DNA of 62,418 nt, the filler included, from Choristocarpus tenellus KU-1152 (Eukaryota; Protista; Phaeophyceae): assembly GCA_964200185.2 (NCBI GenBank). It is 12 parts of 12 records of this genome, joined end to end, with 100 filler letters (N's around TTAATTAATTAA, not from the genome) between each part and the next. Parts side by side here need not be neighbours in the genome. Positions count along the whole stretch, not along the records: positions 25,694 to 31,343 come from CAXNAD020010136.1; 11 more parts are not named here. One strand, written 5' to 3'. The translations under genes and the position numbers were made by a program. Positions 3,001-31,443 of the stretch are shown piece by piece. Positions within the stretch are counted from its first letter, which is position 1, and each line of letters opens with the position of its first letter. Under the pieces are notes generated by a model. It did no database searches and was not told the origin of the DNA. It saw nothing but the letters and a program-made list of their open reading frames with translations.

Positions 3001-4218
3001 TGTTACGAACTTTTGAGGATGACGTTCTTCTATGGAGGTTTGCTGTGGTAGGTTGAAGGTCTTATTTTTCTTTGTATTGTTGTTTGGGTGTGTGCTGTTC
3101 GTGTGTGTTAATGTCTAGATGTTTACATATTTTGAACAACACCCATGTTTTTGTGGCACAATAATTATGTTTTTTTGCATGTCTTTTGAAAAATATTTTG
3201 CTGGGCAAACACAGATTGTGACTGAGATTGGATAAAAGCGTGAGTCCATTGTATACATGTTAGTCTTACTGTCCAGGTCATCCTGTTGAAGTAGTTGACA
3301 CTTTATTGATCCCTTCTCCCCTTCCGTACATGCTATATTGTCAACCAGTTTTTTTGCGAGTCCATGGTATATCAATAGTCTTACCCTCCACGTCATCCTG
3401 TTGCTGTAATTGAAAATCTATTGATATCTCCTTTCCTTCTGTACATACTATGTTATCAACTTTTTTTTTCTTACTCTTTCTCCTCCTTGCTCCTCGGTCT
3501 TTGTTGGACCTGATTTGCCTTCCTCTATGTTTTCATCACCTTGAAAGGCGGAAGTCCACCGTGATCACATCTATGGTGCTCATGTGGCTGAGTACATGGA
3601 ATACCTGATGGAGGAAGATGAAGCCAAGTACAAGGAGCACTTTGCCGAGTACATTGCTGAGGACATTGACAATGACGGAGTGGAGGAAATGTACAAGGAA
3701 TGCCACAAGGCTATCCGTGAAGACCCTTCCCCTCCTCCCAAGAAGGCCTACACTCCCGACAAGTCCTTCAAGAATGCGGTATGTTCTGTATATTGCTGGA
3801 AGGTTACTCTTGATGAAGAAAATACATTTCCAGATTGTTGCTCTGCCTGTATCTTGGAGTGTGTTATGTTCTTCAATATGAACCTACCAGTCTTTTCTGA
3901 AAGATGTACGTACTCTAGTGTATCCTATTTGTTTTTATTAATTTTTTCTAAACTGTTAACCGTTTTTTGAGACGTGCTCTTGTATTGGTATTCTGATATT
4001 GCTCCCACTTCTTGGATGTACCTCGTTTGTTCTTTCTACCTGTAGGGTTTGGATCAGACATTCATGTGCCGTTGTCTTGACCTTTTTGAAACTGTTTCTT
4101 GCTTTTTTTTTGTGGTCAGGTGCGTCTCTCATACGACGCCCGGAAGGCTCGTGTTGAGGAGAAAAAGGCAGCCCTTAAGGCTGCCAAGGAAGCTGAAGAT
4201 GATGATGATGATGAGTGA
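1..4218 (+). CDS. RPL5: 60S ribosomal protein L5 (uL18), 5'-truncated. Exons <1-71, 512-631, 1138-1266, 1926-2035, 2736-2841, 3548-3778, 4120-4218
   Basis: All introns are GT-AG with matching phases. The spliced translation carries uL18 motifs: [93 protein letters not shown]. Stop TGA at 4216-4218. Confidence 0.97.
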
Positions 4219-25593: not shown

Positions 25594-26081
25594 NNNNNNN
25601 NNNNNNNNNNNNNNNNNNNNNNNNNNNNNNNNNNNNNTTAATTAATTAANNNNNNNNNNNNNNNNNNNNNNNNNNNNNNNNNNNNNNNNNNNNCACGACA
25701 AGAAGGACGGCATAGTAAGCTACGGTGCAGGCAATCTTTTCATTAAGTGAGTTCCTGACAATATTTCCACGGCATCTCCAAAATGTCAGGCCGTACCCTC
25801 CACAACGTCAGACTCATCAGATACATCTCGTGGAAGGAGGGTAGACGTCAAATCACTAAGTTCCATGATCCATGGAACCCTCCAAAAAACGACACATCCA
25901 AGGTACAAAGGAGATGAGCAATCCACATGATGTACAAGCAGCAAAGACCTATGTGCAAACCAACGCGAAAACAAACACGCAGAGACGACTTGTGTGTCTG
26001 TATAATGTGCAACCACGCCGAGACCCACATGCACTTCTCCATGTCGGCTGTTTCGCTGCGTGAGGGGGGACGTAAAAGGCT

Positions 26082-29000
26082 TTACGTCGTGGGTGACCCG
26101 CTCGCACTCCTTGCGCGAGCCTTACCCTTGCCCTTGCCCTTGCCCCTGCCCCGACCCGCCGCTTCGTTCCTCACCGATCCAGACCCTTCACTGCCCTCCT
26201 GTGCCATGGGGCATTTGATACATAATCGATCCTTGTGCCTCTCGTTGTCTCTAATCTCTGCGTAGGCACACTTGCCCATATGCATGATGGAGCACTTTGG
26301 GCATGAATACCTGTCGCGCGTGTCATTGAATCAGAGCGTTAAACGAACAGTATAGTATTTTTCCAGATCATTAATTGGGCGCAACAACGCAACGCAGGGA
26401 TCCACGGTTACGAAGGACCACGAAATTGGCCGCGCAAAACAGTACGAAGTAGTACAGGTGAGATACAACAGTTGGTGATGTACATGCATTAACACACAAT
26501 CGGACAGTGGCATTTCTTGAGACGTGGGGGTAGCGACCGCAGCACCGCACATAGAGGGACCCCACAACTTACCATGGATTCAATGGCGTGCGCCGCTGAA
26601 AAGATACAACGTATCTATCCGTTCGGGGGATTGGATGGAAACCAATCTTAAGCTATTAACTACACTCCGCCCTACACGTACACCATTACAACTACATTAC
26701 TTACCGAGACGTAGGTGGAGGATTGCATTCAGTACAGCAAACGCCCGTGTTCCACCCTCCAGCCGTTTTGTTCTTCTTCCGCACCAGGAACACTGCCGAC
26801 AGAACCCCCTTCGCCCGTATCCTCCCTGTCTGGCAGTCCGTTCCCTCCCTCGTCTCCATCCCCTCCTTGGTGTTCGCGCCCTCCCTCGTCTTCTGTCTCA
26901 CGGTCATCTGATGCCGATCCGTTCTTGCTCTCAACTTCTGCACTGCCGCCATCACAGCCCCGCTCGCTATGAATCTGGTGGAGGTTGACCTGGTTGAGTA
27001 CATCCTGGTATTTACCATCCCAGGTGGTGAGGTAAGCCCCACAACTGGACAAACAGAGAAAAAATCCTACCCTCTAAGATAGTTTCACTCAGAAACGAGG
27101 TGGAGATTGACCAAGATCGTTGTCTACAGTTGAAGGAAACGATTTGCAATTCCCGCTATTAGCAACGAAAGGCTAGAACTGACAAAACGGCAAAGTTAGT
27201 AGTATGGAAGGCACTCTGTCGCCAATGATGACGAAGAAGACCTACAACCAATCCTACCAAGCATCAACTATTTTTTTCGGTACAAGCCATTTCAGCTGTA
27301 ATTACGAACATAGGAGGCACACTCACAGCTCTGATCCGTTGCAGAGGTTTCATTTCGACTATCGTGGAGATGTTTGCCCTCAGTTGGCGGACGGGCCCCG
27401 CCTGTTGGTCGCCAGATGAAACCTTCTGCAGAAGTTGGGCCACCTCCCTCTTCCTCTCCTCGTAGTGGCGCTTGACCCAGAGCTCGTGCATACCGCACTT
27501 CTCGTATGCGAGCCTGTCCATTTCCCTGGCAGCCCGTGCATCATTCACGTAACGTCCGGAATTCAGGGTGGTTTCGCAATAATCAGTAAGTGCGGACAAG
27601 AAAAAGACGCTGACGGTGTATGTTACAATGCAGGGGCGCATGGCGACGTATGGGTGCGCAGGAGATACGAAAAAGGCAAAAAAAGATAACCGCTGCAACT
27701 GCACTATTTACCAACCTTTGGAGCTCTGGTGTCCACTTCTCCTTGGGCACAATCTGCCTGGTGCGTGAGATAAGCATCTCAGACATGTGCGCGTCCGATT
27801 CGATCTCCTTGTGGTCCCTCGTCATAGGAGGCTTCCCGCAGAACGACTTGTATCTGCTAAAATAGAATTTCCACGAAGAATGTCAAGGAGAACGATGCGC
27901 AGGTTATGAAGAGGAAAGGGTCGCCACTACAGCAAATATTCATCACTCGATTGTTGTACTTCCTAAAAGACTAGAGCTCATATACACAGGCAACACGCAC
28001 CGTAGAATTACCAGAATACTACGAAGGGATTTTCGTTCGACACAACAATGGCTGACTACATTCTTCATCGTAGGAGACACTTATTTCACGCTCCTGTGCA
28101 ATGTGCTGCGACCTGCATAAACTGTGCTTACTGCTGCCTACACGATAAAACACAGTGGCATTGTGACTTGCCTAGCAAACAGGTGGATGCATAGCCCCTG
28201 CTTGAGAGAAGTGAAGCAGGCAAACTTCACGCAACACAGATAGTTTAGTGAGATTGCTTTGCGGTCAATCTGTGGTGACAAGGACTCACACACTTCCTTC
28301 AGTACCTCGAAGGACTCTGGTTGAAGGGAGTTTACACCTTGCTGCCAGTTTCGTAGAGTTGGTTTGGACGGGGTAGTAACGCCCACCTTCGCAATGGGCA
28401 GAAAATGGAAAACATTATGCACCCAGCCAGCGAGGATGAGGCATCGTTATGACCCAAAGTATCTGGGGGGGGGGGCGGGGCGGTGGGGGAGGGGTGCGGT
28501 CTACACCAGGGTGTCCATTTGGACCAAATCAGGAAACGTGCATTTACATGATCCATTAGGCGTATGCAACTGAATCGTCCAAACATCGCGACATGAAAAA
28601 AATTGACCCCAAATGGACAGCCGCAACCCTCCCCCCAGATACTTTCTGCCTTATTACCCCACCAACGCGGTCTATATGTGTGTGTGTGTGTGGGGGGGGG
28701 GGGGTTCAGGCAACACCGTCGATAAAACAATCAAGGACGCTTTTTATTGCACGTCTATGGTTAACCACACATACATACTACATGGTCACCCGAAAATCAA
28801 TAAGTTGGTTGACAGGGTATCTGAATGTGGGATAACTATCTCAACTTAGGTTGAATAGTTCGACACAGGGATATCTCGCAACAGCTGTAACCCAACTAGA
28901 GGAGGAGTAGAGCGCGACCATCCCATCAATGTCGACAACTCTCTCACCTTTTGGTACATTCTGCGGATCTCTGCTAGTGACACTTCTTTCTTCTTTGTCT

Positions 29001-29847
29001 GTCGCTTGATAGCTTCTTGGAGCTCGTGCTGAAAATATATCTTATCATATAACGTGTGCTCAACCACACTCTCGGTCGCGTCGCTGAGCGCTATAAGCAT
29101 GGCGGTGCAGTGGGCGAACGGGACAAGGGTTAGGTGGGGAGCGATCGCGGGACACACACGGCCTGCGGCACCGAGAAACATGTTGCTGTGGACAGGAATA
29201 CCACGAGGGATAAAAAAGATGAGCAACGAAAAGATCCACAATGGGCTGACTGACAATGAACATAGCAAGAGAAACTCGGCAACAACTTAATATATCAGAA
29301 TAGTCATCAGGCGATCACGGAACAACGAAAACACTCAACTTACTTCGGTGCTTAGTTGATCAGAACGGTCAGGCGATTATGGAACAACCAAAACACTCCA
29401 TCACCCACCGTTGGCAATTAGCCTCTCTTCTGCTTGGTTGAACTCCATGTAGATCTGCATGGTGAAAGCGCGCTCGGGATCAAACACTCTCTTCAGCACC
29501 GTTACTCTATGGTTTCCATCCAATACACGCCCCTCAATGGCAAGCGCAGTTTCGGCGTTGAGTTGATCCACATCACCTAAACATTTTCACTGGATGACAG
29601 CACTTGGAACAAACTGCTCCAGCCAGCCTTTCTCCTTTATAGACTTCCTCACGTGCGCAAGGCCACACTCGCTTAAAGGACGCACCATATCTGTGCATGT
29701 GACGTTTGTGAGTTTCATCTTATACAAGCTAAGATAGTGTTGCTCTAGGAGCTGGGACATGCCCTTCAGAGTTAAGTCCCGCGTTCTGGATCCGTGGGCA
29801 TTTCCATCGGCGGGCGGGTGGGTTGTTGTTGAGGGAATGTTGGACAT
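26082..29847 (-). pseudogene. Spliced gene for a ParB/Srx-like domain - helical/HTH-like - acidic - PHD (C4HC3) - basic tail protein. Exons 29847-29409, 29090-28948, ~28387-28172, 27853-27716, 27525-27327, ~27030-26705, ~26310-26082; disrupted
   Basis: VRPLSECGLAHVRKSIKEKGWLEQFVPSAVIQ*...GRVLDGNHRVTVLK fits the ParB/Srx pattern. Phase-consistent splice sites. The last exons give CTEC...CPKC...HMGKC...CIKC. In-frame TGA at 29587-29589 and frameshifts near 26750-27030. Confidence 0.65.
28451..28650. mobile_element. MITE family A copy in an intron of the ParB-PHD gene, TSD TTAT
   Basis: TIRs and internal sequence match; TTAT on both sides. Confidence 0.85.
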
Positions 29848-30169
29848 GGCAAAGATTGGGAGGGTGTGATGGGGATGGATAAGTAAGAGGTCTGCGTGGT
29901 ATCTACGGAAGGGAATGAATTGAAATGAGGACTGAGGGATGGGAGGTGCTGTTTTATGTCGTCTGGTCTGTCGATCCTAAAAACTCAGATTTCACAATTT
30001 TTATGAGAATTGTGTTACAAAAATACAAATATCAAACAGCATATGATTTCATATTGAACTGGGACAGAGAGTACCTGTATTTTTGTGACCTTTTCGTTTC
30101 GTACATTTCAAACGGATTAGATCAATGAAGGATGTGGTTTTATCTGTATTTGTTGATGTAAAGAGTAGA

Positions 30170-31260
30170 ATATCATTCTAATTTTGTAAAAACTCTAACG
30201 CACGTGTTTTGGGTGTTCAACGGTAATCAAGATTAGCGCTAATCTTGAATACCATAGATCCGCTTTTTTGTGGTCTCTAGTGTTTATTTAAATACTAAAG
30301 ACACCAAAAAGCGGATTTAGTATTTAAATAAATAGTGGGTGCCAATTGGAAAGACTTCTTTTCGTTTCTGAAAATTGGAAACGTGTAAGACCCATAAAGT
30401 GCGTTCTTGGTATTTTTAAAAACCCTAAGAACGGTTATTAGTGGATTTACTATTTTTTAAAACCCTAACGCACGTGTATGGTGGATCTTTGGGTATTCGT
30501 GATTAGCACTAATCCCTTTTAACCAAAGAAGCACTTCTTATCGACTCTATAGTTTATGACAATCGATATGTCGTTTGATAAGATTTTGTACTTCAAATAT
30601 GTAGAGTGTGAGAGTTGTTTTTTGACGTTTTGGTTACTGAAAATTGGAAACATACAAGATCAATTAAGTATGTGATTGCTATCTTGAAAAATACAAATCA
30701 CTGATATATATATATATATTTTTTTTAATTGAAATCACGGATATAATCTGATCTACAAATTCCAAAAAATGTAACCCACGGATTTTCAGGAACATGGATC
30801 TCAGGGTGGTCCCACCGATCACCCGAGGATCAAACAAAGTTGGTTTTGGAAGGTTGGAAATGTACAATATCAATGAAGTATGTGTCTGGTATCTTAAAAA
30901 ATACAAATCACTGATATAATTGGGTTTTTTTAAAATAGAAATCACGGATATAATCTGATTTACAACTTCCGAAAAATGTAACGCACGGATTTTCAGGATC
31001 GGTGGGAACAATCGCCTGAGGATCAAACAAAGTTGATTTCGGAACATTGGAAATGTACAATAACAATTAATTATGTGATTGGTATCTTAAAAGATACAAA
31101 TTAAGATACCAATCACTGATATAATTGGATTTTTTTTAAATAGAAATCACGGATATAACCTGATTTACAACTTCCGAAAAATGTAATGCACGGAAATTCA
31201 AGATCGGTGGGATCTCAGGGTGGTCCCACCGATGGCCCGAGGATCAAACAAAGTTCATAC
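30170..31260. repeat. AT-rich tandem array: about 2 units in 30170-30640 and 3 units of ~190-230 bp in 30640-31260
   Basis: Repeated blocks GAAATCACGGATATAATCTGAT...AAAATGTAACGCACGGATTTTCAGG...GAGGATCAAACAAAGTT, and CTAACGCACGTGT...GATTAGC.CTAATC. Confidence 0.85.
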
Positions 31261-31443
31261 GCTCGTCTTGGAATATAATCACTCCTACACCTTCTCACTG
31301 CCCAAGACCACCTGTTGCTCGAAAAGACCATGCCAGCTGCTTCNNNNNNNNNNNNNNNNNNNNNNNNNNNNNNNNNNNNNNNNNNNNTTAATTAATTAAN
31401 NNNNNNNNNNNNNNNNNNNNNNNNNNNNNNNNNNNNNNNNNNN

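Follow-up and report, generated by a model that had tools for sequence, protein, structure and literature searches.

The first ParB-like accessory genes of eukaryotic transposons were reported in 2025, from red algae and Ectocarpus. In the Plavaka elements of red algae, the ParB-like accessory gene PAG3 has tandem arrays of inverted repeats beside it (bioRxiv 10.1101/2025.02.11.637652), the Ectocarpus element Sola1-1_Ec32 carries a gene that combines ParB-like and DNA methyltransferase parts (PMC12477816), and fusions of ParB, helix-turn-helix (HTH) and methylase domains had been noted earlier in chlorophytes and chytrids (PMC4738411). Here we analyze a stretch of 62,418 nucleotides (hereafter the window, in which all positions are counted) that joins 12 parts of 12 records from the brown alga Choristocarpus tenellus KU-1152 (assembly GCA_964200185.2); one of these parts, the piece at positions 25694-31343 (CAXNAD020010136.1), contains an intron-bearing gene whose N-terminal domain resembles ParB. 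The explanation that we favor, with moderate confidence, is that this gene is a dead copy borne by a DNA repeat of high copy number, most likely a DNA transposon, and that it encodes an accessory protein of that element.

The family represented by this gene resembles the PAG3 and Sola1 genes in that it is carried on repeated algal DNA with tandem arrays and inverted repeats alongside, and further in that the N-terminal domain is seen as ParB only by remote or fold-based methods, the best HHpred match of PAG3 (7BNR) being among the top matches here. It differs from these genes, to which we liken it by their descriptions only, in its helical region, acidic linker, C4HC3 finger and basic tail, and in that the contigs fetched for it yielded no carrying transposon or transposase. 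The family is best read as a differently built member of the recently recognized group of ParB-like accessory genes that belong to mobile elements of algae.

The piece consists of a 3.8-kb minus-strand gene (about 50% G+C), preceded upstream by AT-rich repeats over about 1.5 kb and followed by about 390 bp of downstream sequence. To reconstruct the gene, Logan contigs of four runs were aligned to the piece (X1 and X2 are from the same organism as X3 and have far more contigs), the boundaries of exons 3 to 6 were fixed from cross-species conservation and X3 junctions, and the joined architecture was examined through the database gene models P0008, P0009 and P0036. Seven exons lie within the piece, on the minus strand between 29847 and 26082:

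29409..29847, minus strand: exon 1, N-terminal ParB/Srx-fold domain with SIKEKGW ... LDGNHR (from open reading frames, family alignments A1 and A2, and the predicted fold of P0008)
28948..29090, minus strand: exon 2, ALSDATESVVEHTLYDKIYFQHELQEAIKRQ...; a long helix in the P0008 model
28142..28386, minus strand: exon 3, carrying SKPTLRNWQQ; 3' end uncertain (28168 or 28142)
27716..27856, minus strand: exon 4, RYKSFCGKPP...TPELQ; donor set by an X3 junction
27715-27526, minus strand: intron 4, GT..AG
27327..27525, minus strand: exon 5, EMDRLAYEKC...PLQRIRA; from the joints 27524/27715 and 27037/27328, present only in X3, and conservation in contigs L002, L005 and L019
26705..27037, minus strand: surviving part of exon 6, with YLTTWDGKYQ, the acidic linker and the first zinc knuckle (CTEC)
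26082..26310, minus strand: exon 7, with the remainder of the C4HC3 finger (CPKC..H..C..CIKC) and the RGRGKGKGKGK tail

Exon 1 starts at the ATG at 29847, its end is set by an X3 junction that joins 29409 to 29090, and its translation reads RPL-x7-VRKSIKEKGW, then an in-frame TGA, then VLDGNHR. The initial annotation had given six rather than seven residues after RPL; the features that it described are all present in the sequence. Its phase-consistent splicing holds as well, in that the splice from exon 1 into ALSDATESVVEHTLYDKI keeps phase and the same junction occurs in P0008 and P0009, which are NCBI gene models of relatives, and in X3. The SKPTLRNWQQ segment of exon 3, the acidic linker, the C4HC3 cluster and the Gly/Lys tail are likewise all read on the minus strand. 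The finger (CTEC-x9-CPKC-x3-H-x3-C-x15-CIKC) is interrupted by an intron between 26705 and 26310, and the P0036 gene model shares this splice.

A further coding block, which is probably the terminal exon of the family (exon 8), lies just past the left end of the piece, position 25694 corresponding to position 3008 of the Choristocarpus contig L012. This block (L012:3038-3340) matches L002:7796-8068 of Sphacelaria at 42% amino acid identity (E 5e-26), with a stop about ten codons past the conserved part in both species. In its succession of strand, AEP, helix, HPxGT and strand, it resembles a portion of an alpha/beta domain; it had no Pfam match, and its ESM Atlas search gave no useful lead (one faint row, DUF6589 at 0.82, was disregarded). 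Pfam searches with eight separate exon pieces of the focal gene gave no match, and Rfam and tRNA scans of the piece found nothing.

Run X1 contains 15,939 contig pieces that align to the piece at 80-100% identity and cover all 30 bins, flanks included (1,737 at 99% or more, 3,720 at 95-99%, 6,368 at 90-95%, and 4,114 below 90%). Paralogous copies with 80-91% DNA identity occur on four Choristocarpus contigs, each 3-5 kb long; since identity between copies is about the same in exons as in introns (92.9 vs. 90.4%, 85.7 vs. 84.2%, and 85.8 vs. 89.1%), the copies have drifted neutrally since their amplification. One contig, L004, is an internal-deletion derivative, because its exons 1 and 2 are followed by sequence that in L012 lies downstream of the gene. 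Copy number, the deletion derivative and neutral decay together point to mobility, and on this evidence the initial view of a decaying copy of a repeat-borne, probably transposon-borne, family stands; better-preserved paralogous segments do exist elsewhere (L012, L013, P0008 and P0036).

The focal copy itself is a pseudogene, and its decay is greater than the single stop codon, frameshifts and insertions first described would suggest. It carries five lesions, two of which involve a miniature inverted-repeat transposable element (MITE). Three of the five are as follows:

29587..29589, minus strand: in-frame TGA; L004 and L005 have CGA here, and L001 has AGA
28451..28650, no strand assigned: MITE in intron 2, 200 nt, whose terminal inverted repeats read AAAGTATCT... 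and which is flanked by a TTA(T) target-site duplication; not in L012 or L013
27038..27090, no strand assigned: remnant (right end) of a MITE of the same family, standing in for about 263 ancestral nt

The remnant at 27038-27090 removed the acceptor of exon 6 along with its first codons (ILEKDSTLR), and the finger and the acidic linker are in different frames owing to the loss of 2 nt between 26762 and 26761. In addition, the TAA at 26084-26082 is CAA in L012, position 26084 being G in essentially all of the covering contig depth. Other copies carry lesions of their own.

The terminal inverted repeats AAAGTATCT and the TTA(T) target duplication suggest that the MITE family is of the PIF/Harbinger type; a member also occurs at L001:428-846. 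Contig depth over the MITE at 28451-28650 is about ten-fold above that of neighboring bins, and many contigs join 27090 to 28450-28455 because full-length MITE copies exist elsewhere. The hexamer tandem repeat at 26120-26151 (CCTTGC, 5.3 units), which encodes the GKGKGK tail on the minus strand, differs among copies, and the length of the Gly/Lys tail is therefore probably unstable.

Three junctions without introns are present only in X3: 29409/29090, 27716/27525, and one from exon 5 (end 27327) to the ancestral exon 6. The second skips 190 nt that start with GT and end with AG on the minus strand, and the third is in frame, with RIRA joined to IIEKDSSLRAYLTTW. Because X1 and X2 hold far more contigs yet are without these junctions, X3 (whose library type is not on record) probably represents RNA or cDNA, and transcription and splicing of the family are probable; alternatively, the X3 junctions may be processed DNA copies.

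That the ancestor of these copies was a genuine gene is indicated by its relatives. With the first half of exon 1 as query, a word-index search returned one protein (71% identity), from Choristocarpus tenellus, and an exhaustive HMMER search returned 25 real related clusters, all of them short open reading frames or partial gene models; because the exon-1 motifs are common to these 25 clusters, they are more than chance. Relatives with a name come from Choristocarpus, Sphacelaria rigidula and Ascophyllum nodosum, and the others are from Logan, ENA and JGI assemblies. Their conserved core reads VRPL..GL..V..SI...GWL.QFAPSVVI ... RVLDGNHRV ... RVY.EF ... IAN, and all of their reading frames terminate at the same point past IAN, which is the position of intron 1. 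In alignment A2, S26, G31, L33, D66, G67, H69 and R70 are invariant and W32, A37 and P38 nearly so; a Y is invariant too in the N-terminal domain, alongside S..G.L and D-G-x-H-R. Two further products of the HMMER search, P0007 (a gibbon protein) and P0011, were discarded as low-complexity artefacts.

Exon blocks 1 to 5 and the start of exon 6 recur in Sphacelaria L002 and in contig L005 at 34-75% amino acid identity, while at the DNA level the alignment of L002 and L005 with the piece hardly extends past exon sequence; exons 1, 4 and 5 recur in Ascophyllum. Because exon blocks recur across relatives while little else aligns, the ancestral gene was, by this comparison of sequences, genuine and subject to selection. 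Ascophyllum yielded only two diverged loci, in which exon 1 is kept and the flanks are not; L019 and L020 are one of these loci in two assemblies (99.7% identity). A long intron of this relative contains direct repeats 4 kb apart (L019:11056-15333, equivalent to L020), which are 94.6% identical and have an RVT_2 match between them, the signature of a nested Copia-type long terminal repeat retrotransposon.

The N-terminal domain is supported as having the ParB/Srx (sulfiredoxin) fold, as initially proposed, by the predicted structure of P0008, an intact paralogue from Choristocarpus tenellus. An AlphaFold2 model of P0008 has a mean predicted local distance difference test (pLDDT) score of 84, and the top 48 Foldseek matches to this model in the PDB were all Noc, ParB, sulfiredoxin, KorB, PadC, SbnI or SerK (best E 3.7e-3). 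Alignment of P0008 residues 1-91 with VIA-align gave 30 ParB/Srx entries at Z 5.8-8.9, beyond which all scores were below 5 and involved unrelated helices; SerK (5x0b), its homologue 1vk1, and Arabidopsis Srx scored Z 8.2-8.5, level with ParB and Noc. Among the rows listed by an ESM Atlas shape search, nine of ten carried ParB_N and the tenth was without a Pfam family, many being phage ParB_N-methylase fusions.

Within this fold, Box I (S-I-x3-G) and the G-x-x-R nucleotide-binding motif are present in alignment A2, and S-x4-G-(W)-L and D-G-x-H-R occupy the positions of ParB Box I and GERR, an equivalence judged from secondary-structure order. Across the family, GERRxRA is replaced by L-D-G-N-H-R. 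We take the family's G-N-H-R to be closer to the G-C-H-R of sulfiredoxin and the DGQHR/DGQQR of other ParB-like enzymes than to the CTPase motif, and DGNHR resembles the sulfiredoxin, SerK and DndB branches. Because DGNHR stands where GERRxRA would be expected, a ParB-type cytidine triphosphate (CTP) clamp, which the initial annotation had raised as a possibility, is not indicated, and we do not accept it.

With the bacterial ParB, Noc and KorB clamps, the family shares the N-domain fold (Z up to 8.9), a Box I-like SIxxxG and motifs at the Box II position, and the palindrome-bearing repeats that adjoin the focal gene recall parS arrays. It is unlike these clamps in having DGNHR, in having no Pfam ParB_N or HTH_ParB match and no demonstrable HTH, and in being eukaryotic, intron-containing and equipped with a zinc finger. 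Sulfiredoxin has the same fold (Z 7-8.2), and the family's G-x-H-R sits at the position of the Srx GCHR; however, the family has Asn in place of the catalytic Cys in nearly all members (Tyr in P0009, Ala in P0003), and its proteins are far longer, with unrelated C-terminal parts, and are repeat-borne and multi-copy.

Small proteins with RVLDGNHR(V/I) are also encoded on four phage-like metagenome contigs. Those at L014:4703-5215 and L017:3832-4539 combine ELKES..GY with RVLDGNHR(V/I), continue into hydrophobic, membrane-like tails, and have no match in Pfam or PHROGs. These may represent an undescribed phage ParB/Srx-like subfamily near the algal domain.

Directly upstream of exon 1 lies a field of repeats:

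30183..31255, no strand assigned: upstream repeat field, conserved at 83% in L001
30608-31255, no strand assigned: tandem units of about 205 bp, upstream of exon 1
30183-30514, no strand assigned: units spaced 270 bp apart, upstream of exon 1
30217-30258 and 31064-31127, no strand assigned: palindromes or inverted repeats in the upstream field

A homologous field occurs upstream of exon 1 in L001 and L004. At the same position, Sphacelaria L002 has an unrelated array (113 bp, three units, with inverted arms), as does L006 (270 bp, two units, with a palindrome). In Ascophyllum, two 523-bp direct repeats in L018 (8507-9029 and 9478-10000; 99% identical) abut exon 1 upstream, and L019 has arrays of 117-121 bp upstream. 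Tandem repeats therefore precede exon 1 in four lineages; in the three outside Ascophyllum, where they were looked for, the arrays also contain palindromes or inverted repeats. L018 has additional arrays, of about 130 bp, at a distance of 5-8 kb downstream.

The HTH-like segment noted at the outset in exon 3 is a candidate HTH at most. Exon 3 has 73 residues that are conserved across five sequences (focal, L002, L005, L006 and L012); its AlphaFold2 model shows four helices at low confidence (pLDDT 61), the best Foldseek matches of this model had E of about 5, and no Pfam HTH was found in the exon pieces. The C4HC3 cluster is, from its recurrence in three Choristocarpus-type copies, a real conserved motif, and P0036, a Choristocarpus gene model on contig L013, reads through the acidic linker and the complete finger without a change of frame; no finger was found in the Sphacelaria or Ascophyllum relatives.

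The finger had been read as a PHD finger. In PHD fingers, the consensus has C4-x4-5-H-x2-C spacing and an aromatic residue ahead of the last CxxC. The focal finger shares with PHD, ZZ and RING fingers eight Cys/His ligands in C4HC3 order and three CxxC knuckles, but differs from PHD in its C-x3-H-x3-C spacing, in having R-L rather than an aromatic residue before the last CxxC, and in its lack of a Pfam match: the intact spliced finger of P0036, and also P0036:40-100, matched none of the Pfam families at E<=10 (no PHD, including PF00628 and its relatives, no RING and no ZZ), and a phmmer search of the PDB returned nothing relevant. Because the PHD finger is unsupported, so is the chromatin-reading module that was built upon it. 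The nearest ESM Atlas clusters to the finger are ZZ-type, at 0.88, below the tool's lead threshold of 0.9; a ZZ-type finger (PF00569) is not supported, there being no Pfam match and the resemblance being a sub-threshold one from a language model.

Taken in order, the ancestral protein would have comprised a ParB/Srx-fold nucleotide-binding domain, a largely helical stretch of about 270 residues from exons 2-5, an acidic linker, a C4HC3 finger of cross-brace type (in the Choristocarpus lineage), a Gly/Lys-rich basic stretch, and the conserved C-terminal exon. We infer that this was an accessory protein encoded by the element, which would attach to the tandem repeats just upstream of its gene (these bear palindromes where examined), the ParB-like domain serving as a nucleotide-dependent switch or an oligomerization module. 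Binding to the adjacent array would be the most likely mode of action, and would be comparable to the role proposed for ParB-like accessory proteins of Plavaka in red algae and of Sola1 in Ectocarpus. The analysis shows the fold, the family, its copy number, its neutral decay and the neighboring repeats; binding to DNA, use of nucleotides and carriage by a transposon are inferred.

Several results weigh against a transposon-borne accessory protein of the ParB type. No transposase, terminal inverted repeats or target-site duplications attributable to a carrying element were found on any fetched contig, the search having included 20-kb windows around the Ascophyllum loci and Choristocarpus contigs that are all 3-5 kb, and Pfam detected no transposase in the neighboring reading frames of L003, L005, L006 and L012. 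No methyltransferase or 2-oxoglutarate (2OG) oxygenase Pfam domain occurs in any exon or in exon 8, and the two diverged Ascophyllum loci look more like a low-copy host gene. With respect to the protein, the fold was modeled on P0008 with the family alignment and not on the broken focal sequence, to which P0008 is roughly 75-80% identical (72-79% over the aligned pieces of exons 1 and 2). Pfam ParB_N (PF02195) matched neither the focal pieces nor nine intact homologues at E<=0.1, family profile A1 found no ParB among PDB sequences (searches of these with both halves of exon 1 and with A1 gave chance matches only), and neither family members nor the phage look-alikes matched PHROGs. Because the Pfam, PHROGs and PDB profile searches gave no match, kinship to ParB rests on predicted structure and motifs. 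Binding to DNA is putative, and the exon-3 model is unreliable.

A possible but unlikely explanation for these observations is that the genes derive from an old brown-algal host family of ParB/Srx-like proteins, one lineage of which was swept into a segmental or satellite-like amplification that left its copies as dispersed pseudogenes. The same exon blocks do occur in three named orders, the Ascophyllum loci are few and retain exon 1 without their flanks, and the fetched contigs yielded no transposase. However, such a history does not readily account for about 16,000 contig pieces that diverge in graded fashion over gene and flanks alike, for the internally deleted L004, or for upstream non-coding repeats that were co-amplified at the gene's own identity, a pattern that is typical of mobile elements.

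A second alternative, which we think improbable, concerns the protein rather than its carrier: the ParB/Srx domain could act enzymatically, in the manner of SerK, SbnI, Srx or DndB-type proteins, as an ATP-dependent kinase or phosphotransferase or else as a nuclease, rather than as a DNA-loading clamp, with the finger and tail merely tethering it to chromatin. The substitution of DGNHR for the GERRxRA of ParB CTPases would fit such an activity, as would the scores of SerK, 1vk1 and Arabidopsis Srx (Z 8.2-8.5), which are as high as those of ParB and Noc. Yet no catalytic residue can be assigned, Asn having replaced the Srx cysteine, and the adjacent palindromic arrays better suit a DNA-binding role.

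A more far-reaching version of the transposon explanation, to which we give little credence, is that brown-algal transposons carry a full eukaryotic ParB/parS-like system, in which a nucleotide-gated protein would sit on its own palindromic array while the finger and basic tail tether the element, or excised copies of it, to chromatin, thereby controlling inheritance or silencing. Finally, it is very improbable that this DNA is what is left of an integrated virus, whether a phaeovirus or another giant virus, or of DNA that came from phages, with the ParB-like gene as viral cargo: the nearest ESM Atlas structural neighbors are largely phage ParB_N proteins and four phage-like contigs encode RVLDGNHR(V/I) proteins, but the exon blocks and exon-1 boundary recur in several brown-algal orders, two IMG/VR scans found no relatives, and no contig has viral hallmark genes.

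The focal copy is itself dead, and its only value is as a pointer to the family. If these genes are indeed the accessory genes of mobile elements, the family extends the theme of ParB-like transposon genes to the earliest-branching brown-algal orders, and its make-up differs from those published in combining a zinc finger with charged tails and having no methylase or oxygenase. With the gene situated beside tandem arrays in four lineages, the family would provide a testable pair of protein and site for a possible eukaryotic mechanism of the ParB/parS type.

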